DNA of 64,000 bases from Marsupella aquatica (lineage: Eukaryota > Plantae > Marchantiophyta). Shown here piece by piece: positions 1 to 40,809 of the stretch (its first letter is position 1; every line of letters begins with the position of its first letter). A model generated the notes under the pieces. It saw nothing but the letters and a program-made list of their open reading frames with translations, made no database searches and was not told the origin of the DNA. The position numbers and the translations under genes are program-made. The DNA is taken from positions 7,939,241 through 8,003,240 of the forward strand of contig OZ316899.1 of NCBI GenBank assembly GCA_973895155.1, read 5' to 3'.

Positions 1-599
1 CACAGAATGGCATATACGGGGGATCTATGGAAGGCCTAGGAATTGTCGAGAACTAATCTGATTTTCTATCCCTCTGAGCGGATACTTGGTAGTGGTCGAT
101 TTGTGATGTGCTCCGATGTTTAAAGGGAACGCAGGCATGGAGCACTTGTGACAGGGAAGCAGTGACGGTCCTTTGTGGACAACTGGGAATCAGGAGCACG
201 CAAGATTTATGGTCAAGTGAAATGAATGGATGGCAAGGGCTGGCAGGACAGTGGTTATATCTACGTGGCTTCTCTGAGGAACACTTAACACTTGGACGCA
301 GATTCATTGGACTGTTAGCAGACATCCCTAGCTATGAGTGGGGATAGAGCCTGGGCCGGAGAGCTGGTGTTGGGCTGACAACCCAACAGCTCTAAGGATG
401 TTCAGAGTATCCAATAAGAGAGCATATCAGATGCTGAGAGATCGAGGAGGTGGGAGATTTACAGAGTTTAAACAGGACATGGGGAATTGCTAGCACGGGC
501 GACGAATGGAGTGCAAGTTGGGCGGGGCTGTGGGGATCGGACTTCTCTATGAGGCTAAGACATTTATGTGGCGAGTAGTAGCATCTAGGCTCTTCACGG

Positions 600-961
600 T
601 GTCATGCCGAGGGACAGTGCCGCTTGTGCACATCGGCATGTCCCTCGCATGCCCGCTAGGTATGGTTAGGGCTAGTGTACTACTTGAGTTAGTGTCATGT
701 TCTTGTAGCGAGTCTGGGCTGTTCTTGAAGCAAAAGAGGTTTGTTAGTGTGACGCCTGGACCCGGTCCTACTTAGGGCATGTTTTTCTTTGCCGTTCTTT
801 AGTTCTTCTTGAATCGCTGTGAGACAGAGTTTTTCAGAGGCTGCTCGTCGGTTCCGTACACGGAATTCACACAGTGATTCGTTAGATGCTCCCGGCCGAT
901 CTTGGCATCTCGCCGGTTTTCGATTCGATTTCAGTACGTTTGTTTCTATCACGCCTTTTAT
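600..961 (+). repeat. Repeat A1 (362 bp) of element A
   Basis: Matches 10095-10456 with two transitions seen by eye (T/C at 800, G/A in CCCGG/ACCGAT). Confidence 0.95.
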
Positions 962-974
962 TCAAGAAGAACTG
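960..974 (+). promoter_or_regulatory. Putative self-priming primer-binding site
   Basis: ATTCAAGAAGAACTG at the end of A1 is the reverse complement of (C)AGTTCTTCTTGAAT inside repeat A (801-814; 15/15 against A2); no TGG tRNA-type PBS is present. Confidence 0.75.
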
Positions 975-1291
975 CCGAGTTAGCGGTGAGGAGAAGAAGA
1001 TTGCTCGTGACGATTTTGACAATTTTTGGGTGAAGCCATTGCAATTTCCTTGACGAACATTGGAGCGACGGAATGAAAGTTATGGGTTTATGTTGTTATG
1101 TGTATACTTAAGTGTATACACATATCAATGCTCCCGAGGAGGTCTGGAGTTCATTTTCTGGTTGCATCCGCGACCCCTTTGCTTCTTCTTATTGTCACTG
1201 CCGCTTGCTGCCTCGACTGCTTTTGGGGGCCGTTTTCGCATTCCCGGCCACAGCTGCCGGCGAGTTTGCCTCGGCCGCAGCGAGACGCCTG

Positions 1292-2100
1292 CATAGGGCC
1301 GTGTGCCCTGGTTTCGACACGCTTCCACCCCGGCCTCCTCTTTACGTTTTCGCCTTTGAAGGCCCCGTTTTCTTCTTTTTTTCTCGACCTCCTCCGCTTT
1401 GGTGTGCAGGCTGTGCATAGGGCATCGTGCCCTTGCCTCGCCCATTTCTAAGCAGCCAGAGGAAGGGAAAGGAGCGCCAGGAGAGGGCACGAGGCCCTAG
1501 GCAACTTTAAAGCAGAGGGGGAGGGGAGTACATTCAACTCCCTCTCTCGGGAGTCCTGCCAAGCACGAGGCCCTAGGCAATCAATTAAAGCAGGGGGAGG
1601 GGGAGAAGCGCAAGGAGAGGAGGGCACGAGGCCCTATGGAGGATTAAAGAGGGGGGGTTACATTCGACTCCTTTCCCCTGGAGTCCTTCTGCCACTCTGC
1701 CACTCTGCCAGGCACACAAGCATTCATTAAAGCAGGAGAGGAGGGGGAGCGAGAGTGCCAGGAGAGGGCACGAGGCCCTAATAAGTAACATTAAGGAGGG
1801 GAGGGGGAGTTAGTCGCTCCCTTCTCTTCGGGAGCACATGAGGAGCCAGGAGGGGGCGCGAAGCCCTATGCAGGGCCCGAGCCATTGATTGAGACCCCTT
1901 TTCTTTTCGTTTTTGGTCGCTGCGCGACCTGCAGCGCCCATGTTTTTCCAAATCACAGTGGTTTGTGCATAGGCCCTGGTCTTAATTGGGGCCCCATTTC
2001 TTTTCTTTCGCTGCGCCCTCGCCTCGCTTCCTCGCTTCGCCGCGCTTTTTCCTCCTTAATTAAGTGCTCCGCAGCCTGTACGTACATAGGGTCTCGTCGC
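1292..2100. repeat. Dispersed ~15-bp motif (GGGCACGAGGCCCTA and reverse complement) in the long 5' leader of element A
   Basis: Forward copies near 1484, 1562, 1622, 1766, 1854; reverse-oriented degenerate copies near 1292, 1416, 2085. Confidence 0.7.
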
Positions 2101-2753
2101 TTTTCCCTTGTGCTTGCCAGTTTCTAGGTCCACAATGGGGCCCGATGTGTATACACTTAAGGGGGCCCATTTCACATTTTAGGGGCCCATTTTCCTCGGA
2201 TTCGGACATCAGGTCATCTGCATACGGCTGCGGGTCCCGTGTATACACATCTGACGGTCAATTTGGCATATACATCAGCAAACGCACAGGGGGCTAAATT
2301 TGCATTTTTAAGGGTACTTTTTCTCCGACGGTTTTTCGACGGTGACGGTTTTTCTGTGTGTTTACACATTCGACACATTTCTGCCTCGCATCGTTTGTTT
2401 CCTTTGTGGGTTTTATTTCCTAGCCTTGGGGCTGCCATTTCTTTTTCTTGTCAATTTCTTTCCCATTGGCACCCAGGTGAGCATGCAGCATGTCAGCCGA
2501 CGAGCCAGGAGGTAGCAGCACATCGCCACCGACACCCAGGTACCATTTACGGAGTGATCCACGACCATTGGTGCCAATTTCATTGGAGTCTCGGCAATTT
2601 TGACGACGTCCACAGACAGCAGCAGCACCCACACCACGCAATCCTTCTGCTCCATTTGGCGGTTGCTTCACCACTACTCCCAAGCCTGCTATCACTTCAT
2701 TGCCATTTACCCCTTCTGCATCCGTGGTTGTTCCTGCTTCACCGACATACAGC

Positions 2754-4292
2754 ATGGACGCCAGTCACTCATCTGGCCGCATTGAATGCTTCAGCGGGCG
2801 GCCAGGCACTGTTTCTTTGCGTGAGTTCAAATCCACTTTCTACACTGTTGTTTACGAATTGGAGTTGAAGTATGGCAGCAATTTCACAAATGCTTTTGCA
2901 TTTAAGCAGCTAGCCAGGTATGTGCACCACGAGGCTTTGGATGTGTATGAGCAGCACTCTCAACGGCTGCTTGCTGTCACACAATTGCCTAACCCTGCAT
3001 ATGCCACTGCAATTGCGGCTGCCTCACAACTGGCATTACAGAATGCCATTGCAGCCCATGCTGCTGCTCCTGCCACTTCCCCTCCTACTCCAGTTCCCAC
3101 CACTGCACCAGTTACTCCCACTGTCTTGGCACAGGCTACATCAGGCATTTCTCCCACCATTGATTCTCCTGCCTTTCCTGATCCAGTGGCTGAGTTTTTC
3201 CAGGTTCTTGAATTGCAATTCCCAATCAAGAGTGCTGATAAAATCATGCAGTTGGCCACCTTTGTGAGGCAACGCGATGAAACATTGAAGATGCTGTATC
3301 GCCGGCTTCTCAAGCTGAAGGAAGACACCCAAAGCATCATTGACCTGGAAGCTGCTCATCGCTATCTTCACGCATTGGAGGGCACACCAGCTCTCCATTC
3401 GCAAGTGTTGCAGCAAGTATTCTCAGAGTTTGGAGACAGCTACACCCTGCTCAATGTCTATGACACTGCTGAGAAACTTGAGTTGGCCCATGCACATTAT
3501 GAGGCCAGTATTGCGCGTCCACCGCGATCCAGGTACCAGGCTGCTGCCCCTACACTGGCCACCCCTTCCCGTGTGCCACAGTATGGTTCCAAGACCAAGC
3601 CAGCCCATGCTGCTCTCATGCTGCCATCTTGCAACTACTATGGTAAGCCCAATCACAAGGCTAATGAATGTGATATTGTTGCTGAGGACCTGTCTTGTGA
3701 TTTTTGCGAGAAAGTGGGCCACTTGGAGGCAGTTTGTTTTGCCAAATTCCCAGAGAGAAAGCAGCTACGATAGCAGGCCACTCATCCTGCTCCTGCTTCC
3801 ACTCCCCCACCAGCTAGGAGGGCTCCTACAGCATCCGTTGCTCCTCCTTCCAGTGACAAAGCATCCAGTGCTAACAAATTGCCCAAGCAGCAACAGAAGC
3901 AACCAGCTCAGAAGGAGGCTCACACAGCACAGGCAACTCAACTCCAGTCTCTGACTCATGAGGTTGAGTCATTACGTGCCCAACTTGCCAACATCAAAGG
4001 CAAGTCCACTGCCTCTGCTGGTCCTTCTCAACCGGCTGGTCACGTGCAACCCATCCCTGGCCCAGGCACCACTGACAGTTCAGCACCCCTACCCCGTTCT
4101 TTCTATGGCTTGCCATTTGATGCTCATATGGGTGAGTGTGTGCTGTCCTCTGCTACACAGCCTGGCCTTACAGCAGAATTTTCAGATTCATTCTGCCCTT
4201 CCTATTTTGCTTACCAGCAGGCCAGTGCTGCCTCCCGTATTGCTCCACACGCCGCATTGTACAAGCTGATGGTCTTGCTGCTGGTCCTATGA
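2754..4292 (+). pseudogene. gag: gag of element A, with an in-frame TAG at 3771-3773
   Basis: MDASHSSGRIECFSG start; two CCHC knuckles (CNYYGKPNHKANEC with C>Y, CDFCEKVGHLEAVC); ORF 3879-4292 is in the same frame after the stop. Confidence 0.85.
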
Positions 4293-5374
4293 CTAGAGCC
4301 AGGGGAGCTCGGGCTGTCATGCCCCAATCTTTTCAGCCACTCACACTTGCTGAAGAGCGCACCTTGTTGGCGAGGGGGGAGGGAGCTGCAGCTACATCCA
4401 TTCCACCACCAGGTGCTGCTGACATTTCACAGGGAGTTGTTTTTCCTGAGCTGCTTGAGCATTTCACCTCCGGTATGGCACAAAGGATTCTTACCACTTC
4501 ACTTTTCAGTTGCCATGATTTACAGCTGGATGCTAGAGCTGTCATCAGAGCGCTAGAGGGCTCACTGCATTCTTCATCAGCCCCTGTGACACCGGTTTTG
4601 GAGGTCCAATCTCATGTTAATACTGGACCTTCTTCTTCTCCATTGCATGCTTCCACTGGTTTGGCTATCCCAGTACCGATTTCCAGTGGTAGAGATGACA
4701 GTATTGCTGCAGATTGTGTGACCAGAGCTACACTTGATTCTGGTCATGCTGCTCCATCTTTCCTGGCTATGCTGTTGAGTGGGAAGACCGTGGACACTAA
4801 CTCCCTTCACAAGGTACCTCATCATTTGCCAAAAGTGGTGCCTAGTGACAGGACTTTAGTTTCCACCACCATTGCCATTGTTGACAACAGGAATTCAGCA
4901 GTCAAGTTGGAGGGTCACACTCCTCAGGTGGTCATGCTAGACACAAGTGCTCAACCAGTAATCTTGGGCATTCAGTTTGCCAAGAAGATGGGACTGCTGA
5001 CTGATCATTTACAGCCATCCAGGTGGCACATTCGGACTGCTAGTGGCACTGTGGAGGATGTGCTGGGTGAGAGTTCTACTTTACTCACTCTCACTTTTAA
5101 TGGAGGTACAGATCAGGAATTGCATTTCCCAGTCAGATGTTTGGTTACCAATGCCACTACGTATGATGTGCTCATTGGCCAGGAGGCTTTGTTCCCACCA
5201 GGTTTTACCATTGACAACTGGCATGAGCATGCATACTACAGAGTTGATTGGCATACGGATGGCTCACACTTGGGATACATTCCACTTGATTTGCATGGTG
5301 CCCATACCCCTATGGCTCACCACTGTGTGTTGAAAGCAGTGCACACAGCTACCTATGTCAACCACCCATTGTAG
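4250..5374 (+). pseudogene. Aspartic protease region of element A polyprotein
   Basis: VMLDTSAQP (DTG-like), IRTASG flap and YDVLIGQ motifs; frameshift near 4250; TAG 5372-5374 is in frame with ORF 5402. Confidence 0.8.
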
Positions 5375-5401
5375 GATTGGATTGAGGAGGATGAGGATGA
5401 G

Positions 5402-8400
5402 GTGGCTACTGCACATGCTGCTGCATGTGTAGCAGCACTTTCCAGCAACGTGGATCATCAACCAGAGGTGGTACAACGGCTCCAAGCAGCCCATGGACCT
5501 TTGGTGGCTGCATTGCACAAATTTGAGGACCTTGGGCAGCATCATGGACAACCAATAGCCCCAATCTTGAGCGCACCAGTTACATGGACTCCTCCTTCAG
5601 ATGGCCTTACATTGCTTGAGCTTTTTGGTGGCATTTCTACAGGCCTGGAAGCTCTCCTACAGTCTGGCATGGTGGTGAAGCAGTACATCTATGTGGATAT
5701 TGATCCAGGTGCAAGGCAAGTGGCTGAATCCCGTCTGCTGGAATTTTCAGAGCGATTTCCTCAGCAGTTTCCACACAATGCATGGAAGTCTGCATTTTCT
5801 TTCTTTCCTCCAGATATCCAGCTTGCCCAGCACCGGCACTTAACCCTTCTTGGCTCCCTTGATTTGATCATAGCTGGTTGGGAATGCCAAGGGTTTTCAG
5901 CTCCTGGTCACGGTGCTGGACTGCATGATTCTTGTTCTGGCCTTTTCACAGCATTGGTTCAGATTCTCACCTGGGCTCAATCCCTTTATCCTGCTGTTGG
6001 TTATATCATTGAGAATACTCCATCTCAGTTTGACCAGCGTCCACAAGTCAAAGAGGATTTCAGTGTGGTCCAGCACTACTTGGGACCACCCCTTCTCATT
6101 GATGCAGTGCACTGTGGTTCTTATGCACATCGTCTTCGTAACTTTTGGACTAACCTTGCACCACCTTCCTTGCTGGAGATGGCTCTTCACCACACATCCA
6201 GGGACACTAACCTTACAGTGGACCAGATTTTGGATCCTGACAGTTCTTGCCAACCAGTTACACGGCAAGAGCCAGCACCTTGGTATCCAGCTAATACCAT
6301 TGGACAACCCCGTGCTGCTTGGCCTACATTTGTGTCCTTTCCAGGTGCACATGCTTTTCAGGGTGATGGTCCTGGGCTGGTTTATCGACATTCTACCGGT
6401 ACATGGGATGAACCTAGTCCTGAGGAGAGAGAACGGGCTATGGGCTTCCAACCCGGTACTACAGGTCACACCAAAATCACCAGGCTGGCCAGGAATGCTT
6501 TACTTGGCAGGGTAATGGATCTCAATGCTCTCACTTGGCTTCTGGTCACTTGCATCCTTTTTCAGATGTACATTCCTCCAGCATTAGGAGCTCCAGCCTT
6601 ACCACTCCACAGTGCTGCTGCATGGCATCCAGACCAGGTGCACTTACCTCTGTCCAACACTCACCACTTCAGTCCAAGTGTTGGGGGGGAGGAGGTCCCT
6701 TGTAATGTGGCTGACATTATTTCTGAGTTTCATGGTGTGGATCAGACCAGAGCAACAGATACAGCAGGCCTTGGAGAGGCCTCATCACCTTATCAGCAGC
6801 ATGCTAGCAGCTTGGACAGTGGAGAGGCTGGCACTTCTGGCTCTTCAAGCACGAGTACATCAGGTCCTACTCCTAGTGTTGCCAACTACACATTTATCAT
6901 GGGCAACCACCTGAGTAAAAGACAGAAGGACCAGCTGCTGAATTTGCTCCTCAAGCATGAGAATGTGTTTGCTTTCTCTATGAAGGACTTGGGTAAGTGC
7001 AAGACTATGCAGTTCTCCATTGAGTTGGCTGATGAAACACCTATCTTCAGGCGGAGACACCGTTTGAGTAAGCATGAGTGGCAGCTGGTGGATGAGAGGT
7101 GCCAAGAGCTTTATGAAGCTGGTCTTATTCAACCATCTACATCAGATTTTGCGGCAGCTACAGTGATGCCAGCAAAGAAGGATTCCAGTGGATTGTGGAC
7201 AGAGAAGCGCATGTGTGGGGACTACAGGCCATTGAACCTGGTCACACCCCAGGACAGGTACCCCATGCCGCGGCCAGAGGAGCTATTTGACAGCATTGGA
7301 GACTCAGACATCTTCACTCTTGTGGATCTAAGGCAAGGCTTCAACCAGATTTTGCTGCTTGCAAAAGACCGCAAGAAAACAGCTTTCCATGGTAGTAACC
7401 AACTATGGGAGTGGTTGGTGATGCCATTTGGCTTGAAGAATGCGCCTATATTCTTTCAAAGAGTCATGGACCAGGTTCTTCAAGGTGCTGAGTTTCTGAA
7501 ATGCTACATTGATGATGTGTTGGTCCACAGCAAAGGATTTGACCAGCATCTACTTGACCTTGAGGAGCTATTCATGAGGCTTAAGAAGGTGAACCTAAAG
7601 ATACACCCCAAGAAGTGTGAATTTGCTGTCAGATCAGTAGTATACCTTGGGCACCGCATTCTTCCAAATGGAACCATGGCTCACTGGGCCAAGGTGGTAT
7701 CCATCTTGGAAATGCCCACTCCTACCGATGTTCACACTTTGAGGAGTTTTATTGGGTTGTGCAATTACTACCGGATCTACATCAAAGATTTCAGTACCAT
7801 TGCACACCCATTGTATGCTTTGTTGAAAAAGAATGTGACTTGGACATGGAGTACAGATGCTGAGGCAGCATTTGCCACTTTGAAGGAGAAGCTCTCAGAA
7901 TACCCGGTGCTGAGAAGACCTGATTTCAGCAAGGTCTTTGTGCTACACACAGATTGGAGTGCCCTTGGGATTGGTGCCATTCTGGGCCAGCATGATGAGG
8001 AAGGTAAAGAGTACGTCATTGCCTATGCATCCAGGAGCAACAATCAGGCAGAGAGTCATTATTCTTCTTATGAAGGTGAATGCCTTGCTGTTGTGTGGGC
8101 TGTCATACATTATAGGCCCTACCTCTATGGGACCAGGTTTGTTCTCTACACCGACCACCAGCCCTTGAAGTGGTTGATGACCAACGACAAGCTTACTGGC
8201 AAGCTTGCTCGTTGGGCGCTCATACTCCAGGAGTATGATTTTGAGGTAATTCATAGGCCTGGTGTGACACATCAGAATGCTGACACTATGTCCCGCAGCC
8301 CTTTGATTACCTCTGATGATTCCTCAGATGCACGGCAAGATTTTGACCAGGCTTCCATCCTGCCTACATTTCATGCATCGACCTATCTTGCTTTGCTGCC

Positions 8401-9877
8401 ATGCTATGTTGTTGACCAACCTGTGGTGGACATATGGGAGGACAGCGACACTCTGAGATTTTTGCAGCATGGGGAGTACCCCACACATGTTACTGCTGCC
8501 CAGAGAGACCGAATTCAGCAAAGGTCCAAGCGCTACTTGTGGAAGGGAGATCATCTCGTGCGTTGCTTGCCAGACAGGGAAGTGGTGGTTCCACCTATTC
8601 ATGAGAGGGTTGGCCTTATCCGTAAGGTACATTCTGAGCTTGGTCATTTTGGTGTTAAGAGGACTTACAGCCTCTTGGTCCCTCATTATCATTGGAGAGG
8701 CATGCATGGCCAGGTTCGAGATGTTATTGCCCGGTGTGAACAGTGTGATAGGGTGAGGACTTCCTTCACATCTCGACAACCCACACTTCATCCACTCCCT
8801 ATTCAGGGCATGTTTTATCGCTGGTCATGTGATTTGGCTGGAGAATTACCCCTCACGTCTCGGGGTAATCTCTACATCATGATCATGATAGAGCATTTCT
8901 CCAAGTGGATAGAACTTGTGGCATTGCCGGATAAGACCTCCCGTAGCACTAGCCAGGCATTCCTACAACAAGTTCTCAGCCGCTTTGGAGCTTGTGCAGA
9001 ATGTCTCACTGACCAGGGCTCAGAGTTTAGAGGAGAGTTCCAGGAGCTGCTTGATCAGGCCCTCATTGATCATCGCCGGACATCACGAGATCACCCACAG
9101 GCAGATGGCTTGGCAGAGCGCATGGTTCAGACATGCAAGAAGGGCCTCCGGAAGATCTGCCTCACCAAAAACAAGGAGGACTGGGACCTGGCCTTACCCT
9201 ACATTGCCATGGGGTATAGGATGTCCAGACATGCGTCATTGTCTAACTTTTCTCCCTACTTCTTGTTGTTTGGTCGTCACCCAGTTCCACCTTCTGCTAT
9301 TGCTGCTCACATGCTTCAGGTGGTGGACTTGGATTCAGCTGTGACTTGGTCTGATGTGATCTCTGAGAGGGCTGCCCTATTCAGGAGGGTTATGCCCATG
9401 GCCATGGAGAATTTGGCCATTGCACAGCACAGGGACACACTGCGTTATGCACACACACGAGGGGGCACTTTTCAGCCCAAGGTCAGGAAGTTTGATGTGG
9501 GAGATTTCGTGTACTTGCAGCGGCAAGCTAACGACACCCTGGACACCTCTACCAGTCGCACTATTCTCAGGGTCAAAGCTATTCGACCGTCTGGAGTGCT
9601 AGAGTTACAAGGGGCAGATGGGCGCACAATTGCTGACAATGCCAAGAATTGCGCCCCTTGTCATCTGCCTAACCTGGATCCCACCATTGTGACTTCTACT
9701 TGGATTCCACCTGTGGACTACCCTTGCAAAGTGTGTTTGCGAATTGATGATGCTGACCAGATGCTGCTGTGTGACAATTGCAATGGAGGGTACCATCTTT
9801 TCTGCCTTCGGCCTGAACTTACCCAGGTGCCAGAAGGGTTATGGTTTTGCCTTTCCTGTGCTCCACGTGCTATCTGA
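5402..9877 (+). CDS. pol: pol polyprotein: C5 DNA methyltransferase - RT - RNase H - DDE integrase - PHD finger
   Basis: RT: RMCGDYRPLN, MPFGLKNAP, YIDDVLV; RH: LHTDWS, YEGECLAVVW, YTDHQPL; INT: HSELGH..CEQC zinc finger, WSCDL, LTDQGSEF, DGLAERMVQ; uninterrupted 1491 aa. Confidence 0.95.
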   Translation: MATAHAAACVAALSSNVDHQPEVVQRLQAAHGPLVAALHKFEDLGQHHGQPIAPILSAPVTWTPPSDGLTLLELFGGISTGLEALLQSGMVVKQYIYVDIDPGARQVAESRLLEFSERFPQQFPHNAWKSAFSFFPPDIQLAQHRHLTLLGSLDLIIAGWECQGFSAPGHGAGLHDSCSGLFTALVQILTWAQSLYPAVGYIIENTPSQFDQRPQVKEDFSVVQHYLGPPLLIDAVHCGSYAHRLRNFWTNLAPPSLLEMALHHTSRDTNLTVDQILDPDSSCQPVTRQEPAPWYPANTIGQPRAAWPTFVSFPGAHAFQGDGPGLVYRHSTGTWDEPSPEERERAMGFQPGTTGHTKITRLARNALLGRVMDLNALTWLLVTCILFQMYIPPALGAPALPLHSAAAWHPDQVHLPLSNTHHFSPSVGGEEVPCNVADIISEFHGVDQTRATDTAGLGEASSPYQQHASSLDSGEAGTSGSSSTSTSGPTPSVANYTFIMGNHLSKRQKDQLLNLLLKHENVFAFSMKDLGKCKTMQFSIELADETPIFRRRHRLSKHEWQLVDERCQELYEAGLIQPSTSDFAAATVMPAKKDSSGLWTEKRMCGDYRPLNLVTPQDRYPMPRPEELFDSIGDSDIFTLVDLRQGFNQILLLAKDRKKTAFHGSNQLWEWLVMPFGLKNAPIFFQRVMDQVLQGAEFLKCYIDDVLVHSKGFDQHLLDLEELFMRLKKVNLKIHPKKCEFAVRSVVYLGHRILPNGTMAHWAKVVSILEMPTPTDVHTLRSFIGLCNYYRIYIKDFSTIAHPLYALLKKNVTWTWSTDAEAAFATLKEKLSEYPVLRRPDFSKVFVLHTDWSALGIGAILGQHDEEGKEYVIAYASRSNNQAESHYSSYEGECLAVVWAVIHYRPYLYGTRFVLYTDHQPLKWLMTNDKLTGKLARWALILQEYDFEVIHRPGVTHQNADTMSRSPLITSDDSSDARQDFDQASILPTFHASTYLALLPCYVVDQPVVDIWEDSDTLRFLQHGEYPTHVTAAQRDRIQQRSKRYLWKGDHLVRCLPDREVVVPPIHERVGLIRKVHSELGHFGVKRTYSLLVPHYHWRGMHGQVRDVIARCEQCDRVRTSFTSRQPTLHPLPIQGMFYRWSCDLAGELPLTSRGNLYIMIMIEHFSKWIELVALPDKTSRSTSQAFLQQVLSRFGACAECLTDQGSEFRGEFQELLDQALIDHRRTSRDHPQADGLAERMVQTCKKGLRKICLTKNKEDWDLALPYIAMGYRMSRHASLSNFSPYFLLFGRHPVPPSAIAAHMLQVVDLDSAVTWSDVISERAALFRRVMPMAMENLAIAQHRDTLRYAHTRGGTFQPKVRKFDVGDFVYLQRQANDTLDTSTSRTILRVKAIRPSGVLELQGADGRTIADNAKNCAPCHLPNLDPTIVTSTWIPPVDYPCKVCLRIDDADQMLLCDNCNGGYHLFCLRPELTQVPEGLWFCLSCAPRAI
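5603..6545 (+). other. DNMT3-like C5 cytosine methyltransferase domain inside pol
   Basis: Motifs in canonical order: I LELFGGIS, II YVDID, IV DLIIAGWECQGFS, VI YIIENT, VIII AHRLRNFWTNL, IX EERERAMGF, X RNALLGR. Confidence 0.92.
9724..9862 (+). other. PHD finger (C4HC3) at integrase C-terminus
   Basis: CKVC...LLCDNC..GYHLFCL.P.L..VPEG.WFCLSC. Confidence 0.93.
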
Positions 9878-9909
9878 CTTTTCTTCAGCCCTCCTTTTGG
9901 CTGTGGTCT

Positions 9910-9916
9910 GGGGGGG
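9910..9916 (+). promoter_or_regulatory. Putative polypurine tract of element A
   Basis: G7 run directly before repeat B1, about 30 nt after the pol stop. Confidence 0.65.
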
Positions 9917-10092
9917 ATACAGAGGTTTACACCTCCACTACGTACATACCACCTCAGTTGCTTTTTCTTGGCACCTGTGAATGTGATTGGACTTTTTCTA
10001 TGCATGTTGGTTGCTAGCAGCTTGCACATATGCATTGCCGGTGACTTGTATGTTTTCGATACACTATGGCTACGATACTATATGTCACGACA
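9917..10092 (+). repeat. Repeat B1 (176 bp) of element A
   Basis: ATACAGAGG...TGTCACGACA, no difference seen from 10457-10632. Confidence 0.95.
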
Positions 10093-10094
10093 GC

Positions 10095-10456
10095 TGTCAT
10101 GCCGAGGGACAGTGCCGCTTGTGCACATCGGCATGTCCCTCGCATGCCCGCTAGGTATGGTTAGGGCTAGTGTACTACTTGAGTTAGTGTCATGTTCTTG
10201 TAGCGAGTCTGGGCTGTTCTTGAAGCAAAAGAGGTTTGTTAGTGTGACGCCTGGACCCGGTCCTACTTAGGGCATGTTTTTCTTTGCCGTTCTTCAGTTC
10301 TTCTTGAATCGCTGTGAGACAGAGTTTTTCAGAGGCTGCTCGTCGGTTCCGTACACGGAATTCACACAGTGATTCGTTAGATGCTCCCGACCGATCTTGG
10401 CATCTCGCCGGTTTTCGATTCGATTTCAGTACGTTTGTTTCTATCACGCCTTTTAT
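10095..10456 (+). repeat. Repeat A2 (362 bp) of element A
   Basis: Direct copy of 600-961, separated from B1 by GC. Confidence 0.95.
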
Positions 10457-10632
10457 ATACAGAGGTTTACACCTCCACTACGTACATACCACCTCAGTTG
10501 CTTTTTCTTGGCACCTGTGAATGTGATTGGACTTTTTCTATGCATGTTGGTTGCTAGCAGCTTGCACATATGCATTGCCGGTGACTTGTATGTTTTCGAT
10601 ACACTATGGCTACGATACTATATGTCACGACA
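10457..10632 (+). repeat. Repeat B2 (176 bp) of element A
   Basis: Direct copy of 9917-10092 abutting A2 with no spacer. Confidence 0.95.
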
Positions 10633-11761
10633 ACGGGGGTTAGGGTGGTCAAAATTGGTAAAGGTAATGGTGAGTGCAAGCTGTGTCCTGGAACACTGGA
10701 GACTATTCCACACTTGTTCATGACCTGACAACATGCACAGCGCTGCTGGCAGCTCTATTCTCAAAGCTTTGAGGGCATAGTTGCGGATTATTCTGTGGGG
10801 TTGTGTGGGATGATAAATTTTACGGTGGATAAGGAATATAGGAAGGTAGTTAAAATGTGTCTTATACCAGATATTGTGCATGATATAGTTGGGACATAAT
10901 GAGCATATGTTCAAGCAGGGCGGGGCCCAGAGGTTTGATATTTGATTTGCTCTCAGAGGTGGTGGATCATGTCACTACGGTCGGGCTTACACTACCAACG
11001 AGTAACAGACGGACTAGGCTGCTGCGGGTGAAAGAGATTATAAATGAAGAGCGGCTCACATGGTTGAGGCGTTGGGACTGCTAGATCACATCAAGGTAGT
11101 GTAGGAAAGATTGAATGTGGGATAGTAGGCTGGCTAGGTGGATGGATTGTTGTAGGATAAGTCTGTTATGGTAGTCAGATTGGTCTCTTGTGCCTGATGG
11201 CTAGTAGGAATACATGCTACGGGTGCTGTTGGTAAGCCAATTGCATTTGAGTCACGGAACTTGACTACCTTAACACTTAGCTCCGGCGTCACTGACTCCG
11301 ACGCCGAGCTCCCTTATGGTCCAGGCCCGGATAGGCCATCCGGGGAGGACTTAGCATGGGGAGACTTGTGGGCAATGAGACGTGGCACTAGCGAGGCAAG
11401 GAGCCAAGCTAGGGACATACACTAAGGACTTGGACTAGCTGATAGCTGGTCGGGTCAAGGGGAAATGGGCCGGGCTCAAGGATGGCCATCCGGACCTCCG
11501 GATGGACTTTGAGTTCTGAGGGCTTGAGTGTGAGCTCCTCTTGGGCCCAAGGCCCATGGAGTTGATGCCATGGGCAACGGACGCTTGGGGCGCAAGTTAT
11601 GGCCCAATCCGGGTTGGGCCGGTCGAGGGGCCCAAGTAGCAATGAGACTTGAGGGCCTAGGCATGAGCACTGGGTCAGCCCGATCACAATGGGCTAAGGC
11701 ACTCCACTTGCAGATGCCTAACAAGAAAGGTATGGGCGTTGGCAGTTGGTGGTGCGCCCAT

Positions 11762-12573
11762 TGTCGTGCCAAAAGATTTCGGCTCAGGAATGGCTTTTAT
11801 AGGGGATGATGGGCGAGGCCTCTCGGTTGGGTTGCATGCATGCTGACTTGGAGGGGCTGCTTGGTTGGTTGGATTGAGGTTTGGTGATTGGGTGACTCAT
11901 CGTCACCAGGTTTAGTGTTTGGGTGAGTCACCAGGCTTGGAGTTTGGATGAGCCTCGCTGATGGCAGCTGGCTCAGGCTGGATGGTCGGGTTTCTGATGC
12001 TACTTAAGACTTGAGCCTTGGCTCATTGAGGTTGGCGGTTGTCTATTGAGATCTGTTGAGTTGCGTTCTGTGAGTTCCGCTCCGTTCTGCGGAACTCGAC
12101 TGCTGTGCAGCGGTTTTGGAGTTCTGGGCAAGTGTTGGATCCAGGTGTGGAGTTTTTGATCCAGGCGGGGATTTCTCAAGTTTGCAGTCTCGTCAATCCA
12201 GGCGAGGATTTCTCGAGTTTGGAGCCTCGTTGGACCAGGCCCGAGTTCCGTGTGAGCTATTTTAGACTAGTGGAGTAGCTAGTCGAGTTTTGGTTTTGTG
12301 AGCTAAGGAGGATAGTTTTTCCGTCAGATTTTTGAGTAGGTAGTCACTCGAGGAGTTCTACTCGACAAGTTAGAGGTAGCGGCCTGCCGTAGGGCCAGCT
12401 ATCAGACTCTTGCGGGCAAGCTTACTCGAGGGCACCTATTGTAACCTTTGTGAGAAAAGTAAAAAATATAAAAGAGTGAGAGTTTGCTCCGAAAAGTGCT
12501 TGTTGCCTGTCCCAATCACAGCCATAAACGCGCAATTTTCCCGAGGAGCCCCTAACTTTAAGTCCTCGCGACA
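11762..12573 (+). repeat. 5' LTR of element B (812 bp)
   Basis: Direct repeat of 18433-19279; contains ~35-bp GATCCAGGCG tandem units. Confidence 0.95.
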
Positions 12574-12574
12574 T

Positions 12575-12592
12575 TGGCGACCATACTGGGGA
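12575..12592 (+). promoter_or_regulatory. tRNA primer-binding site of element B (Arg-like, tentative)
   Basis: TGGCGACCATACTGGGGA one base after the LTR end. Confidence 0.75.
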
Positions 12593-12615
12593 TTCCTTGG
12601 GGCGATTGGATGAGA

Positions 12616-15600
12616 TGGATGACTATGACAAAGTTGATCGGATCTGGAGCATCGTCATGTCGATGATGAGAACCATAAGGAAGGAAGAGCTTGAGGCAGA
12701 AAGGGCGAATAGGGAAGCGAATAGAACTACTCGGTGTCTCCAAGAGGTTCTGAAGGAGAATGGGCAATTTGATGGGAGAAATGTGACAAGCTACCTTAAG
12801 TCTTACTTGACAGAAGCAGCTGTCTACAAGTTGGACGAAGGGACGGCGGTGAAAGAGTTCATGGTGCTGGTTGAGAAAGAGTTGAGTTTGACGGTGCGGA
12901 CCATCGTTGAGTCAACTGAGGGCTGGGATGACTTCGACCAGAAGATGAAAGAGGAGTTCCAAGCGGAGGATGTTGATTGGGTCACGCAGGCTACCTTCTT
13001 GGATTGGGTGAATGATAGGAACAAGAACCTGAAGGGGCCGCAAGAGCTCCTAAGGGAGTTCAAGAGAAGGGTGTCTCAGTTACCAAAGCGGGATGTGGGA
13101 ATCATAGAGTTGCAGCGCTCAATGCTCTTCTTGAGGGCAGCCGATGAGGACCTTTGAGAGGAGCTTGAGAACGCAATGGAGCTGCTGGAACCTTCGAGAG
13201 TTACCTTGTCTAACAACTGGAACCAAGTTGAGAAAGCGGTGTTGAAAGTGAGCAATCGACACCGGCGGCGAGAGCTAGACAAGGAGGCTACCACTCTCGA
13301 CCTAAGGCCGCCGGAACTGATATTGAGGAAAGGGAAGCGAGAACCAGTGAAGGATGAGATCAAACCATTGATGGATGATCTCTCGGAAATGATGCAGAAC
13401 CTGAAAATCTTGGCGGCACATGCGGTCGAGAATCCAAAACCGAGGGTTGCGAGTGCTCCCGAGAGGAAGCAAGAGATGCAGAGTTGGCCATGCATGTGCT
13501 GCCACAGCAAAGAGCATGACAAACGGGAGTGCTTGGACCTGAGGGAAGCTGCGGATAAAGGGTTGATCAAGTTCATTGGTGAAGTTGGTCAGAAAAAGAT
13601 ATCGTTTGCCAATGCTGAAGAGTCGATTCCATTCAACTCCAACAAGGGAGGCATGAAGGATTTGGCTGAGAAGCGAGTCAAAGAGGCGTCCTCTTCACAC
13701 CCGGAAGCGAATGTTTACAATGTGGAGTTGGATGGCCCCGTGACGGAAACGGACAAGTTTTACAAGCGCTTGGCGGATCTGGTGCGAGAGAGATCCGGAT
13801 GGAGTGACCCGGTGCTGATCAATGCGATAACGGTTGAGGTTGGGGCTAGTTGGGATGCCTCGGTCGAGTCAAAAAGGAAGAAAACCGACAAGGATGACAC
13901 TCCGTCTCAATCAAGGGAACGAGAGAGGCGGGATACTTGAGACAAGGAGAGAAGGGTTAGGTTTGAAGAAGAGGAAATGAGCAAGAAAGAGCCGGAGAAA
14001 GGGAAACCGAACAGGAAGGACCCAGGCTGGGTGCTTGGCAGGGATGTGGACCAGGCCATGTACCCGGAGGTTGTAGCTGAGAAGTTTTGGAGCCAATTGG
14101 CTCAAGGGTTTACCAATGCTGAGTTCTTTGGCAGTATGAGGCGGGAGATCCAGGAAGCAATCTTGGAGAGATCCAAGAGGAAACAGATTTACAAAGAGGG
14201 CCCTCACACCTTGGCGGGGGAGGATGGCGAGATGGAAATTGGGAGTTTCTGAACTTACACTGCTGGGGCGTCCATGGGTTCAGGTAGTAAGCTTGCTGGC
14301 CCCGAAGAGTCAGACTTGGAGAAACCAAAGAGGGTCAAGTCCCTTGAAGAGGAGCTCGTGAACTTGGACGATGAGTCCTTCGAGGCGGAAGAGGAGCTCA
14401 TGGGAACCAGAAGCAAAGCTGAGTCTATGGCAAACAGGGACCCGACTAAAGGGGAAGAATGAGAAAGCATTACTGCGCTGTCAAGGACCATTCATGTCAT
14501 GGGCTCAATGAAAGGAAACAGTTATGCTTACCGAGATGGATACTGGGCTCGAGCAAGTCCGGAGAGTGAGTGCCAGTTGGAAGGAATGGAAGGCAAGGTG
14601 CGGGCGCTCATTGATACTGGCTTGGAGATCAACTTGATGGATCCAAAGGTGTTTCAAAAGGGGAATTGGCCGGTGGATAATGAGTTGCTTTGGAGTGTGA
14701 ACTCGGTGAGTTCAACGAAGGACTATCTTTGGGGCGGATATCCAAATGTGATGGTGAAGTTCGGGAATGTCAAGCAGGCTTGTAACATTTTTGTTCATGA
14801 GCACTTGTCGTTTCCGGTGATACTGGGCATGCCGTTCATCACTGAATGGAGGATGGAGACGAAGGTTCTGGATGATACTACCTTCATGGTGAAGGTTCGG
14901 AGCAAAGATGGGAAAGAGGTGGTTCAATTTCTGGTTGTTTTACCTGGAAACGAGAGGAATAGGAAAGGGTTGAGGACTGAGAGTGCCGATGCTGGTCTAG
15001 GTCCGGAAAACAACTTGGCACTTCGCTGAAAAGAGTGGATCGGCGGAGTGCTCGTTCCTTAGCTCCTTGTGAAGGGGAAACACTATGGATAATGGGGAGG
15101 AAGAGCCACTCAAATGTGCGGAGTCTAACTTGGGAAGGGACAAGCTGGAGAAGGAGTTGGAAAGGCAGTACTTGTCTATGGCCGTGCTTGTATACTCAAG
15201 TACCAAATACAAGACGGTTGACAAGAAGGTGAGGCCGGCGGCGATACCTTTGCCGGACGATGCGATGGAGGTTATGGATCGAGCGAGATTGGAACCAAGG
15301 CTGAGGCCAACTGATCGGATAGGGCATAAGTTTACTCAAGAGAGTTTGGCAAAGCTTAAGATTGGTTCGGATGGGTTACTTACAGAGGTGGAGCAAGTGG
15401 CATTTCAAAAGATGATAATGGAGCATGGCAAGGCATTCTCATTTTTGATTGAGGAGATTGGTTGTGCGGATCCGAGTAAGGTGACGCCAATGGTCATCTT
15501 TACTGTCCCTCATGTTCCGTGGGATCTGAAACCAATTTTGGTTCCACGGGCTTTAGCTCCGAAGCTTGCAGAATTGCTTAAGGAGAAGTTGAGTGCTAGG

Positions 15601-18293
15601 ATTCTCGAGAGGTCTGATGCTCCCTACTCGAACAAATGGTTTACAATGAGAAAGAAGAATGGAAGCTTGAGGTTCATTTAGGATATGCAACCTCCAAACA
15701 AGGTGACCATAAGGAATATGGGAGTTGGGCCACTCGTGGATGAGTTTGCAGAAGAGTTCGCTGGGAGGGCGATCTACTCCATGGGTGATTTGTTTTTGGG
15801 TTACGACCAGTTCCAGTTGGCGCAAGAGAGCCGAGATATTACGACTATGAGGACCCCGCTAGGCCTCTTGAGGATGTGCACTCTTCCTCAAGGGGCGACG
15901 AACTCAGTACCGCACGTGCAAAATGTGATGAGTAAAATCTTGGAGTCGTTCATTCTGGAAAAACCGAGACCATTCATTGATGATGTCCCGATAAAGGGGT
16001 GCTTGGTTGAAGGGAAGGATGAGACCATGAGGAGTGATGGGATCCGACAGTTTGTTGTGGGATCACATTGCTGATGTTAAGGCAGTTCTTGAGAAGCTGA
16101 TTGATGTGGGAGTCACTCTTTTGGGGGAGAAGTCTGAATTCGGGATGAAAGAGGTGAAAGTCTTTGGGCAAATGTGCGGATCTTATGGAAGGAAGCCGAA
16201 CATGGATAAGGTGAGAGCTATTAGCGAGATGATGGATTGCAAATTGGTGCCGGAAGTTTGGAGGTTTATGGGTGCTTGTGTCTTTTACAAGATCTGGATC
16301 CCTCACTTCTCGCACCTGGCGGACCCGCTCTATGAGCTGTTGAGGAAAAAGGTTAAGTGGAGATGGCTACCCAAGCATAGTGAAGCAATGGCTAAGCTTA
16401 AGAGCGCTCTCATGAGCCCGCCAGTTCTCCGAGCTGTGGACTATGAGAGCGGGCAACCACTGATCATGATTGTTGATGCGAGTCTGTTTGCAGCCGGGTG
16501 GGCTGTTGGGCAAGATGACGAGAATGGGGACAGGTATGCGATCAGATTTGGGGCAATTTTTTTTACAAAAAGGCAAAGGAGATATGCTCAAGTTAAGAGG
16601 AGCTTTGGGGTGCCAAAGTGGCACTCCATCAGGAGAGGAACTATTTGATTGGGGCACCGGTGGTGGTTGAGATTGATTGCCAATTGCTGCTGGGGATGAT
16701 TGCGAATTGTGACACGCCTGACATAGCAATGCTCAGGTGGATTGCTTTCATTTGGATGTTCAACCCTGAGCTAAGTCACATTGCAGGAAAGGATAATCCG
16801 GTTGCCGACATGCTGTCAAGGGCAAGATTTGGAAATGAGGTAGTAACGAGAGTTGGCAAGGTGACTGGAACCGAAAGTGTTGGAAGTCTAGAGTTCAAGG
16901 AAGAACTCTACTCGGGAGAGTTGCTGGATATTGGGCGTTATATTAGCACTTTGGAGAAGCAACCAGAGTGGAGTTACCAGGAGTTTGTCAAGATCCGAAA
17001 GAGATCTTACAAGTTCCTATTGAGGGAGGGCTACTTGTGGCGAAGGCATAAGGACCCAAATCAGTTGTTGCAGAGGTTGTGGATACTAAGGATGAGAAAG
17101 ACCGAATTCTCAAAGAGTGCCATGATGCTGACATGGATGGGCACAAAGGGGTGCATTTGACTTACGAGAGGGTTCGGAAGCTGTACTGGTGGCCAGGTTT
17201 ATACTTGGCCGTTCGAGACTATGTCGAGACTTGCGAGATTTGCCAGTTTTACTCGAGGATCCGACATGGGGATGGATTGGTTCCAACTTACCCCGTGGCT
17301 CTACACTTTCAATGGGCTGTTGATGTGGTGTACATGCCGAGAGAGAGCAATGGGGCGAGATACTTGGTTTTGGTGAGAGAAGACTTGTCTTCTTATGTGG
17401 AAGGGAGAGCGTTGGTTTCGAACACTATTGCTGCCGTTTGCCAGTTCATACTTGAGGATATCATTGCAAGGCATGGGTGCTTTACAAGGATCAGAGCTGG
17501 TAGGGGGGATCTCAGCTCCAAGGAAGCGCAAGAGTTTTTTGACCAATACCGCATCAAACTGAAGCTGACTTCAAGTTACAATCCGGAAGGCAATGGGAAA
17601 TCTGAAAGGGGGCACATCCAGATTGTGAGCGCTTTGGCTAAGGCTTGTGATGGGGACTTGGGCAGGTGGTCAATTCTCCTTCCACTTGCTCTGTTAGCGG
17701 ATCGGATGACTTGTAGCTCAGTGACCGGATACGTTCCGACTGAGCTACTTGCTGGGCACTTGCCAATGATGCCACTCGAGGAAGATGTTTGCAGCTGGCG
17801 ACTGATTGGATGGAATGATGAAGTTTCAAGAGAGGAGTTGCTGGCTCGAAGGATCGAACACTTCAACTTGTTACCCGCAAAGACTGAGGTGGCTCGGAAG
17901 CAATTGAAGATGGCAAGGTTAAGGAACAAGGGCAGGTTCGACAGGACTCATCGGTTGAGGCCTGTCTTGGTTAAGGATTGGGTTCTGGTTTACAAAAGTA
18001 AGTTGGACGAGCAACACTTGAGCCGAAACAAGTTTTCTAGGAGGTGGCAAGGTCCGTATGTGGTGGTTGTTATTCATGCAAATGCGACCTACACTATTCG
18101 GGAGTTGGATGGAACAGTTCACCAAGTACCTTACGCAGGGAAAAGGGTGAAGATCTTCAAGAGGAGGACCAAGAAAGGAATGGACTCAAGTTCTGACTTG
18201 AGTGAATTTGAAGATGAGGCACTGGTCCAGGCGCATCCGTTAGACTTGAGTTTCAAAAGTGGCTTGACTGGTTCTTATACGGATGGTTCCTAA
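12616..18293 (+). pseudogene. gag-pol of element B, broken by several stops and frameshifts
   Basis: FDGRNVTSYL gag start, CMCCHSKEHDKREC knuckle, ALIDTG protease, LPQGATNS/FIDDVPI RT, IVDAS RNase H, H..H..CEIC and NGKSERGH integrase, RRWQGPY. Confidence 0.92.
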
Positions 18294-18432
18294 GGCCGAG
18301 TCTGAAGGCTTTGGGTTTGAGTTTCTTGAGGAGGAAGTGGTCCAGGCGCATGGCTCGAGTTTGGACTCAGACTTAGAGGAAATCTGATGGATTGGAGCAG
18401 ACTGGAGGCTGCTAAGGTTTACTGGGGGAGGA

Positions 18433-19279
18433 TGTCGTGCCGAAAGATTTCGGCTCAGGAATGGCTTTTATAGGGGATGATGGGCGAGGCCTCTCGGTTG
18501 GGTTGCGTGCATGCTGACTTGGAGGGGCTGCTTGGTTGGTTGGATTGAGGTTTGGTGATTGGGTGACTCGTCGTCACCAGGTTTGGTGTTTAGGTGAGTC
18601 ACAAGGCTTGGAGTTTGGATGAGCCTCGCTGATGGCAGCTGGCTCAGGCTGGATGGTTGGGTTTCTGATGCTACTTAAGACTTGAGCCTGAGCTCATTGA
18701 GATTGGCGGTTGTCTATTAAGATCTGTTGAGCTGCGTTCTGTGAGTTCCGCTCCGTTCTACGGAACTCGACTGCTGTGCGGTGGTTTTGGAGTTCTGGGC
18801 AAGTGTTGGATCCAGGTGTGGAGTTTTCAATCCAGGCAGGGATTTCTCAAGTTTGGAGTCTCATTGATCTAGGCGGCGATTTCTCAAGTTTGGAGTCTCG
18901 TCGATCCAGGCGAGAATTTCTTGAGTTTGGAGCCTCGTTGGTCCAGGCCCGAGTTCCGTGTGAGTTGTTTTAGACTAGTGGAGTAGCTAGTCGAGTTTTG
19001 GTTTTGTGAGCTAAGGAGGATAGTTTTTCTGTCAGATTTTTGAGTAGTTAGTCACTCGAGGAGTTCTACTCGACAACTTAGAGGTAGCGGCCCGCCGTAG
19101 GGCCAGCTACTAGACTCTTGCGGGCAAGCTTACTTGAGGGCACCTATTGTAACCTTTGTGAGAAAAGTAAAAAATATAAAGGAGTGAGAGTCTGCTCCGA
19201 AAAGTGCTTGTCGCCTGTCCCAATCGCAGCCATAAACGCGTAGTTTGCCCGAGGAGCCTAACTTTAAGTCCTTATGACA
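18433..19279 (+). repeat. 3' LTR of element B (847 bp)
   Basis: Direct repeat of the 5' LTR with one more ~35-bp unit. Confidence 0.95.
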
Positions 19280-38458: not shown

Positions 38459-40809
38459 AGTAGTGGACCTAGCCACCCAGCGCCCTCACCAATCCTAGCA
38501 CTCACACCTAAGTGCCCCTGGTGCCCGAACGCCTCCACATAATACCTCGAGCAAGCACCCCAGTGCCCCTTGCACCGCCAGCGGCCCCTCCCATACAAAG
38601 CCGCACTTGCTCTCCAACACGACCGCTACTCAATAGTCCTCACTGTCTGCACAAGCAACCAAGCACCTCGGTAAGTAACCCTTCAGGATCTAGAACTCGC
38701 CAAGTCTAGCATCCTAACTCAAGCTCAACAGACATTGGTAAATAGGTCAGCGATAGGTCCTTCTGATGCCATAAGTCGGAACCATAACCCGCGCCCATTG
38801 TTCGTCTAGAACAGCTCCTTCCTTGGGCGCGGTCCGGGTTCCCCCTTGTACCTATCCATCACCAATTGACCGCCCTGACCCCAGGACATGCTCATGGCCC
38901 AAGTAGCATAGCTTGTCCTAAAGCTTGTCCCAACACGTCGGGACCAGAATGGCCCCGACTCTAGCAACCAACTCCCGATTTGCCTCACTAATGGTCTAGG
39001 GGCCAAACACTCTTGGAACTCAACCTCCACACCTACTTGGCCTTGCCTCCCCAACGTAAGCTCCCTTGGGAGCCCCTTGGGAGACTAAACACGGTTTGGC
39101 TGCTGTTTGGCAGGATTTGGCAAGCGGACGAGTTAACACCCGTAAACCTTGATAACCCATGGTTCCCCTAGACCCAGATGATCTCAGGAGGTCATAGCCC
39201 TTGTCAAGAGCTTTCCAACGCACCCAAGAAGTCCTCCAACGGACTTCCCGTTGAGAAGATATTGTCATTTCTGTTTGACGGTTTCCTTTAGTGTCGCGAC
39301 CGCCACGGCTCACGACTTTGGCTCGCCCTTAGCCCCCAGGGAGACACCACTCCCCTCATATATGCTTTTGGAGACTTGCCACCCCCGGACCAGCTTTGGT
39401 CCCTAAACATTTGGCCCCCAACCCAAATCCTATCGCGCATAATGGGCGCGCCACCAACTAGCAACGCTGTCGTGCCGAAAGATTTCGGATCAGGAATGGC
39501 TTTTATAGGGGATGATGGGCGAGGCCTCCCGGTTGGGTTGCGTGCATGCTGACTCAGAGGGGCTGCTTGGTTGGATGGATTGAGGTTTGGTGATTGGATG
39601 ACTCGTCATCACCAGGTTTGGTGTTTGGGTGAGTCACCAGGCTTGGAGTTTGGATGAGCCTCGCTGCTGGCAGCTGGCTCAGGCTGGATGGTTGGGTTTC
39701 CGATGCTACTTAAGACTTGAGCCTCGGCTCATTGAGGTTGGCGTTTATCTATTGAGATCTGTTGAGTTGCGCTCTGTGAGTTTCGCTCCGTTCTGCGGAA
39801 CTCGACTGTTGTGCGGCAGTTTTGGAGTTCTGAGTGAGTTTTCGATCCAGGTGGGGAGTTTTTGATCCAGGCGGGGAATTTCTTGAGTCTGGAGTCTCGT
39901 TGATCCAGGCGGGGATTTCTCAATTTTGGAGTCTTGTCGATCCAGGCGAGGATTTCTCGAGTTTGGAGCCTTGTTGGTCCAGGCCCGAGTTCCGTGCGAG
40001 CTGTTTTAGACTAGTGGAGTAGCTAGTCAAGTTTTTGGTTTTGTGAGCTAAGGAGGATAGTTTTTCCGTCAGATTTTTGAGTAGTTAGTCACTCGAGGAG
40101 TTCTACTCGACAAGTTAGAGGTAGCGGCCCACCGTAGGGCCAACTACCAGACTCTTGCGGGCAACCTTACTCGAGGGCACCTATTGTAACCTTTGTGAGA
40201 AAAGTAAAAAATATAAAGGAGTGAGAGTTTGCTCCGAAAAGTGCTTGTCACCTATCCCAATCGCAGCCATAAACGCGTAGTTTGCCCAAGGAGCCCCTAA
40301 CTTTAAGTCCTCGCGACAACGCCCATAACTTTCTCGTTAGGCATCTGCAAGCGGAGTGTCTTACCCCGTTGTGATCGGGCCAATCTAGTGCTCATGCCTA
40401 GGCCCTCAGGTCTCATTGCCGCTCGGGGCCCCTGATCGGCCCAACCTAGATCGGGGCATAACTTGCACCCCAAGCGTCCATTGCCCATGACGTCAACTCC
40501 ATGGGCCTTGGGCCCAAGAGGAGCTCATACTCAAGCCCTCAGAACTCAAAGTCCATCCGGAGATCCGGACGGTCGTCCTTGAGCCCGGCCCATTTCCCCT
40601 TGACCTAACTAGCTCTCAACTAGTCCAAGTCCTTAGTGTGTGTCACCAGCTTGGCTCCTTGCCTTCGCTAGCACCACGTCTCATTGCCCACAAGTCTCCT
40701 CATGCTAAGTCCTCCCCGGATGGCCTATTCGGGCCTGGACCATAAGGGAGCTTGGCGTTGGAGTCAGCGACGCCGGAGCTAAGTGTTAAGGTAGTTGAGT
40801 TCCGCGACT
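38459..40809. mobile_element. Family C unit, copy 3, interrupted by a B solo LTR
   Basis: AGTAGTGGACC...GTTCCGCGACT; colinear with copies 1 and 2. Confidence 0.85.
39468..40318 (+). mobile_element. Solo LTR of family B (851 bp)
   Basis: Homologous to 11762-12573; perfect 4-bp TSD ACGC. Confidence 0.95.

Follow-up and report, generated by a model that had tools for sequence, protein, structure and literature searches.

The stretch of Marsupella aquatica DNA analysed here (64 kb of contig OZ316899.1, referred to as the window) contains a Ty3/Gypsy retrotransposon with split direct repeats, at positions 600 to 10632. A repeat finder and self-BLAST of the window gave the repeat order A1-internal-B1-GC-A2-B2, and this layout, the TG..CA ends and the perfect 4-bp target site duplication (TSD) agree to the base with the first-pass annotation of the sequence. 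Repeat A1 (600..961, + strand) starts with TGTCATG, the left integrase end, and would carry the promoter, R and U5; it is 362 bp long and 99.4% identical to A2 (10095..10456, +), the two mismatches being at positions 800 and 895. Repeats B1 (9917..10092, +), assigned to the 5' part of U3, and B2 (10457..10632, +) are 176 bp each and 100% identical, and both end in CACGACA, which in B2 is the right integrase end. The outer ends of the element, TGTCATG...CACGACA, are flanked by perfect copies of the TSD, ACGG (596..599 and 10633..10636, +). Self-BLAST of the window detected no TSD around the internal part alone, and no further copies of A, B or the internal part elsewhere in the 64 kb.

The two equal long terminal repeats (LTRs) by which a Gypsy element is recognised are absent from the genomic copy, which has A alone on the left and B-GC-A-B on the right; the inferred complementary DNA (cDNA), unlike the genomic copy, would carry equal LTRs. 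A run of seven G (9910..9916, +), found at the same position in relatives, abuts the start of B1 and is the putative plus-strand primer, or polypurine tract. B1 and A2 are separated by exactly two bases, GC (10093-10094), and the end of B, this spacer and the start of A form a palindromic junction (10086..10101, no strand assigned) with the perfect core GACAGCTGTC at 10089-10098. The palindrome contains both integrase ends and resembles an LTR-LTR circle junction. A2 and B2 are in direct contact (10456..10457, +), with no bases gained or lost; this joint, where the putative right and left cDNA termini meet, is exact in the window copy and heterogeneous in relatives. The identity between the copies of A and between those of B marks the window copy as a recent insertion.

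Pfam domains in the open reading frames (ORFs) of the element follow the Ty3/Gypsy order PR-DNMT-RT-RNaseH-IN-PHD. The gag-like ORF (2700..3773, +) gave no Pfam matches and is 24% identical to residues 62-420 of the related protein P0004, and the aspartic protease ORF (4136..5374, +) lies in a frame different from that of gag. The pol ORF (5402..9877, +; 1491 amino acids), recognised by its Pfam domains and the alignment of relatives, includes on the same strand a weak match to the DNA methyltransferase (DNMT) family PF00145 (about 5591-6556), reverse transcriptase (RT, 7199-7660), RNase H (7847-8236), the H2C2 zinc finger (8594-8761) and rve core (8816-9097) of the integrase (IN), and a PHD finger (9725-9859). 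The DNMT part is 41% identical to that of P0004 over 393 amino acids and retains the FGG, ECQG and ENT motifs. The DD35E residues of the integrase are invariant across an alignment of 14 sequences, the window included, and no match to a tyrosine recombinase was found in 16 ORFs of at least 100 amino acids on both strands, ORFs parted by in-frame stops being searched as separate pieces.

P0004 is encoded by a single ORF of 2358 amino acids, and compared with it the window copy is interrupted at three places: by a stop at 3771-3773, by a frame change between about 4136 and 4290, and by an in-frame stop at 5372-5374. These interruptions may be sites of programmed recoding or signs that a young copy has begun to decay. 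Between gag and the primer site described below, the 1.7-kb leader contains four degenerate copies of a 38-nucleotide (nt) G-rich motif (1483..1801, +).

Distribution of the split-repeat layout

Protein relatives of the element were found in green algae and Klebsormidium, and the methyltransferase is present in many of them. Two contigs encoding relatives about 51-56% identical show the repeat order of the window: L004 has A1 at its left end and, on the right side, the G-run, B1, two bases, A2 and then B2, and in L005 the G-run, B1, GC, A2 and B2 abut exactly. A scan of JGI metagenome contigs yielded 80 loci with 47-80% protein identity, onto which A and B were mapped. These are counts of loci, not proven independent events, and most of the relatives are old, decayed metagenome copies, some of which were seen in two assemblies (L006/L009, L035/L045, L069/L070, L031/L032 and L058/L059). 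The layout ...pol-B-NN-A-B was present in 37 of the 80 loci (13 with A1 on the contig), and 24 loci ended in ...pol-B only (eight with A1 on the contig), an A-internal-B product that the first-pass annotation had not considered. One real locus (L017, the same as L063) showed ...pol-B-A followed by unrelated DNA. B was not found to the left of A1 at any locus, so that the mirror form A-B-GC-A-internal-B is missing from all 29 visible left ends, window included. Contigs L003, L091 and L092 were too short for both ends to show, and a Haematococcus locus (L088), nested with other elements, was left out of the layout parsing.

A motif-anchored check revealed perfect 4-bp TSDs in ten elements (the window and nine relatives), six of the A-internal-B-A-B type (window, L020, L027, L054, L057 and L071) and four of the A-internal-B type (L042, L044, L067 and L074); four more elements have a 4-bp TSD with one mismatch. 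Together with the TG..CA ends and the failure to find a tyrosine recombinase, these duplications bear out the earlier attribution of the insertion to a DDE integrase. The palindromic junction is conserved in L001, L002, L005, L071, L087, L089, L090 and L091. The L087 element, from the volvocine alga Pleodorina starrii, shows in order B1, a perfect palindrome of 20 bp with an ACA-GC-TGT core, A2 and B2, and the GACA-GC-TGTC core recurs in L001, L002, L089, L090 and L091. The palindrome spacer is always 2 nt, being AC in L004 and, in the old metagenome copies, GC or variants that are mostly transitions from GC. The G-run lies directly 5' of B in nearly all copies, and in young ones (window, L004, L005 and L087) B1 differs little or not at all from B2.

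A search of other copies for conventional LTR pairs, or for signs of an assembly artefact or a one-off rearrangement, had been proposed as a check on the structure. With 37 loci ending in B-NN-A-B, the permuted split-repeat layout is normal for the family and is not an isolated event or an artefact, and a chance layout is excluded because dozens of independent loci share the architecture. Other arrangements were also observed. L002 (8592-18801) contains a complex array, A'|B'-GC-A-internal-B-GC-A|B-A'', in which the outer A copies are 97.8% alike and only about 88-90% identical to the inner ones, and the inner element apparently occupies the palindrome of a different copy. L052 has a reverse-oriented solo A|B unit (6059-6529) beside an A-internal-B type element; such units would resemble ordinary solo LTRs.

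The first-pass annotation stated that no such structure had been described for Gypsy elements, which is incorrect. The KnitGypsy-Dnmt3 element of Klebsormidium nitens was reported to have a DIRS-like repeat structure with Gypsy domains (de Mendoza et al. 2018, Fig. 4c legend, PMC5890265). Like KnitGypsy-Dnmt3, which has a Dnmt3-like cytosine methyltransferase embedded in a Gypsy pol, the window element has a C5 cytosine methyltransferase within pol and combines the A-coding-B-A-B order with Gypsy domains. The window copy is not the same family member but a more distant one, and over RT-IN it shares 47% identity with the K. nitens protein P0105. At the corresponding K. nitens locus (L086) the copy is truncated and lacks terminal repeats, so that it was uninformative for the DNA ends. 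Beyond the figure legend, no text on the ends, duplications, priming or mechanism of KnitGypsy-Dnmt3 was found in PMC5890265, and a literature search found no other paper using the name. The layout has been noted before and never explained, and the window copy is a further member of this little-known kind. As far as could be found, the literature searchable here does not mention self-priming in these elements, an internal integrase site of palindromic form, what the joint represents, the class of A-internal-B copies, the lack of the mirror form, or the occurrence in chlorophytes.

Probable self-priming and the A2|B2 joint

Fourteen bases (960..973, +), the first two of which belong to A, span the end of A1 and can pair without a mismatch with 801..814 (+) inside A. 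The former would be the primer-binding site, and the latter the 5' end of the RNA, acting as self-primer. Such pairs, 11-16 nt long, were found in five lineages with five different sequences, starting at the end of A or at most 3 nt from it: 14 nt in the main metagenome family (L034, L040, L057 and L060) and in L071/L083, 11 nt in L004, and 16 nt in L089, where the pair starts exactly at the first base past A. The chance of a perfect match of 12-16 nt at a fixed border is about 1e-4 to 1e-5 per element, and the fact that the pairs covary between lineages dispels any doubt. In the window, the pairing is present in both the minimum-free-energy and the centroid folds of 801-990. A primer site of the tRNA type was rejected, as the sequence after A lacks a TGG start and covaries with A instead.

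Complementarity that covaries in five lineages points to self-priming of the Tf1 kind. In Tf1/sushi elements, the RNA folds its 5' end back onto the primer-binding site, and the same is predicted for the plant Tcn1 clade (PMC6317226). The window element shares with these elements an RNA 5' end (here putative) complementary to a site after the left repeat, and the absence of a tRNA-type site, whereas Tf1/sushi and Tcn1 have ordinary LTR pairs and chromodomains in place of the PHD finger and split repeats of the window clade. For the latter, it is the covariation that suggests self-priming.

Since the primer site adjoins A and the G-run adjoins B, the canonical rules of reverse transcription predict an LTR of the composition B-GC-A, bounded by the B start and the A end, a reading that is well supported. 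This composition had already been proposed from the window sequence, and the borders in relatives, together with the covarying self-primers of the five lineages, speak for it. Given a cDNA of the form B-GC-A / internal / B-GC-A, the A2|B2 contact would represent the right cDNA terminus joined head-to-tail to the left one, that is, the end of U5 to the start of U3.

The variation at A2|B2 supports this interpretation, as it is the single variable point of the structure, ranging from -3 to +1 nt, with element-derived insertions in two relatives. When each element's own A1 was taken as reference, 6 of 13 lacked 1-3 nt at the joint (L020, L027, L033, L035, L051 and L057), and the missing bases are the two or three common to A and the primer site, a loss that fits imprecise removal of the primer. 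Indels inside the repeats amount to 36 per 8,900 aligned bases (0.004 per nt), so that by a rough estimate they are about 20-fold enriched at the joint. One extra G, from the G-run, is present at the joint of L066, and in L014 the joint holds about 135 nt duplicated in direct orientation from the region immediately 5' of B1, G-run included. The 765-bp gap between A2 and B2 in L004 (9039-9803) is an inverted copy, at 98.7% identity, of the element's own internal positions 1827-2589 (763 nt; gag region). Joined termini are expected to yield additions from the polypurine-tract side and fragments captured from the cDNA of the element itself, an inherited templated joint is not, and the findings, those in L004 and L014 included, support the earlier claim that A2|B2 is a join of the two cDNA ends. 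The identity of B1 and B2 in young copies is in line with a single template for both repeats in each cycle.

Possible routes of integration

The window copy probably represents a self-priming Ty3/Gypsy element of a green-lineage PHD/DNMT clade, whose cDNA termini are joined before insertion by a DDE integrase; this explanation, in our opinion, accounts best for the data. The mechanism as a whole is plausible and partly supported. Transcription would start inside A1, near 801, and the first 14 nt of the RNA would fold back on 960-973 to prime the minus strand, while the G-run before B1 would prime the plus strand. Reverse transcription would give B-GC-A / internal / B-GC-A, the natural termini of which would not be integrase ends; the ends TGTC... 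and ...GACA would instead lie back to back inside each LTR as GACA-GC-TGTC, mimicking an LTR-LTR junction. The genomic form, A-internal-B-GC-A|B, would be a circular permutation of this cDNA, implying that the end of A was joined to the start of B before insertion. The DDE integrase would then use the palindrome beside the A on the primer-site side as both ends and produce the 4-bp duplication. That the enzyme used the start of A and the end of B is shown by the TG..CA ends and the TSDs. If the two palindromes of unjoined linear cDNA, or the one of a 1-LTR circle, were used instead, the product would be A-internal-B, unable to replicate.

The joint could be one-sided. The plus strand, last to finish at the A end, would switch to the left terminus and copy B up to the palindrome, which would lengthen the right side only. 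Because the mirror isomer is missing, this version is favoured, as a speculative one, over the free opening of a ligated 2-LTR circle.

The latter takes up the model of the first-pass annotation, the linear cDNA being circularised with both LTRs by end joining in the host and the integrase then opening either B/A palindrome without preference. Its joined termini and permuted product are retained here, and the small losses, 1-nt additions and captured fragments at the joint typify end-joined circle junctions. Retroviral integrases are able to cut palindromic LTR-LTR junctions (PMC1905944, PMC1180852), so that cleavage of this sort has precedent, and A-internal-B-GC-A|B is one of the two products predicted. 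The other product, the mirror form, is however expected to be equally frequent, and none of the 29 left ends shows it, against 14 A-internal-B-A-B elements with a visible left end. The A-internal-B copies with duplications, which are common, do not follow from a freely opened circle either. To account for the lack of the mirror form, a polar step, a preference in opening or a much faster collapse of that form into A-internal-B has to be assumed; to rescue the symmetric circle by deletion between the A copies of the mirror form, a rate difference of about 7-fold or greater would be required (rough estimate). Without such added polarity the circle model appears unlikely. The polarity is explained, as is the identity of B1 and B2, if templated strand switches during reverse transcription regenerate the termini, as proposed for PAT and Ngaro elements, with RNA running from A1 into B2, B1-GC-A2 serving as internal template, A|B being inherited and linear A-internal-B-GC-A-B made directly. 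The same layout characterises the split direct repeats of tyrosine-recombinase elements (PMC8969392, PMC5890265). Yet with a primer site after A and a G-run before B, canonical transfers would never copy B2, and neither a primer site after B nor a purine tract before A was found. The joint also varies exactly at the primer-derived bases and has extras from the polypurine-tract side, neither of which an inherited joint predicts, and we regard this route as distinctly improbable.

Integration by a tyrosine recombinase, as in DIRS, PAT and Ngaro elements, shares with the data the repeat layout only. In no ORF of at least 100 amino acids on either strand was a recombinase domain found, the integrase is intact with its DD35E residues, and TG..CA ends and 4-bp TSDs are present, which recombinase elements lack (PMC8969392); the proposal is already contradicted and deserves almost no credence. 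Hardly more credible is a secondary event or artefact, whether a mistake of the assembly, a single rearrangement, or the presence of an LTR-less insert within one of two A+B LTRs in tandem. A+B alone does resemble a canonical TG..CA LTR, but the layout recurs in dozens of loci with differing flanks, ages and assemblies, and in distant lineages; moreover, the primer site and the G-run lie at the borders of A and B, and the internal part has no flanking duplication.

Several points weigh against the joining of cDNA termini before insertion as set out above. The absence of the mirror form in 29 of 29 visible left ends is contrary to a symmetric circle. The roughly 24 A-internal-B loci could equally be primary insertions or later B1/B2 deletions. 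The fold of the whole RNA leader is not more stable than shuffles (z = -0.87, not significant), and only the specific 801-814/960-973 pairing, not the whole fold, was counted as evidence. The window copy, with its two stops and one frame change, may itself be inactive. The start of the RNA, the form of the cDNA, the agent of joining and the internal cutting by the integrase go beyond the observed anatomy, conservation, covarying primer complementarity, duplications and variable joint, and are inferred. Finally, the long-read contigs L001 and L090 carry internal-LTR-internal tandems that the model does not require.

In these two contigs (L001, whole, and L090, 5696-9150) one B-GC-A LTR lies between two internal regions, and the cyclic contig L089 (11634-13977) has two tandem B-GC-A LTRs. 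The three structures may be tandem arrays, extrachromosomal forms or assembly walks, and they were rejected as proof of circles or concatemers, given that identical repeats let an assembler walk a cycle.

Relation to known elements and significance

The window element shares its A1-internal-B1-A2-B2 order with PAT-like, Ngaro and DIRS elements, including TOC1 and TOC3 of Chlamydomonas and SymbioDIRS-Dnmt3 (PMC8969392, PMC5890265). Those elements have a tyrosine recombinase and no TSD, whereas the window element has a DDE integrase, TG..CA ends, a 4-bp TSD and a 2-nt B1/A2 spacer that completes a palindrome. Other descriptions of split direct repeats concern tyrosine-recombinase elements that lack duplications (PMC8969392), and TOC1 is presented in two papers as a non-autonomous recombinase element with an unusual LTR arrangement (PMC5613634, PMC9940879).

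The 2-LTR circles of HIV-1 and foamy virus resemble the window element in having a ...CA-NN-TG... palindrome with both integrase ends, and there is evidence both for its cutting (PMC1905944, PMC1180852) and for integration fed by 2-LTR circles (PMC4372172). In retroviruses this palindrome arises only from the joining of termini, as a side path, whereas in the window family it is built into every LTR, and the joined A|B would not be an integrase site.

Ordinary Ty3/Gypsy elements share gene order, integrase, TSD length and TG..CA ends with the window element. One of them, a decayed neighbour directly downstream (11762-19272), has two equal LTRs (11762-12566 and 18433-19272, 90.9% identical) and an integrase ORF (17079-18293), in contrast to the A on the left and B-GC-A-B on the right of the window element. 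The ordinary LTR pair of this neighbour indicates that the window is not generally odd. A third copy of its LTR lies at 39468-40318, and the region is a nest of repeats. Over about 10 kb on the downstream side of the element (positions 10001-20000 of the window), the GC skew is strongly positive (0.2-0.3), which sets this part apart from the remainder of the window.

The broader proposal concerns a whole clade of DDE-integrase Gypsy elements, present in chlorophytes, Klebsormidium and moss-associated genomes, for which the integration of circularly permuted cDNA would be obligatory. These elements would keep their integrase sites as a junction-like palindrome in U3, and each replicating copy would carry a fresh terminus joint, made in a polar way that yields one isomer only. 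The evidence leaves this proposal evenly balanced between acceptance and rejection.

If it is correct, joined-termini DNA, a dead end in retroviruses, would be a productive intermediate, and the clade would be a natural case of the old circle-junction route of retroviral integration, using an ordinary DDE integrase. The split-repeat layout would then have evolved independently of tyrosine recombinases, and these elements would offer a tractable system for the use of internal sites by integrase and for the joining of cDNA ends. LTR-finding software that expects two equal LTRs will miss or mis-annotate this widespread green-lineage clade, which includes DNMT-carrying elements of epigenetic interest. 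Real, widespread and puzzling in its mechanism, the structure allows a direct test of whether joined cDNA termini can serve as a productive integration precursor.

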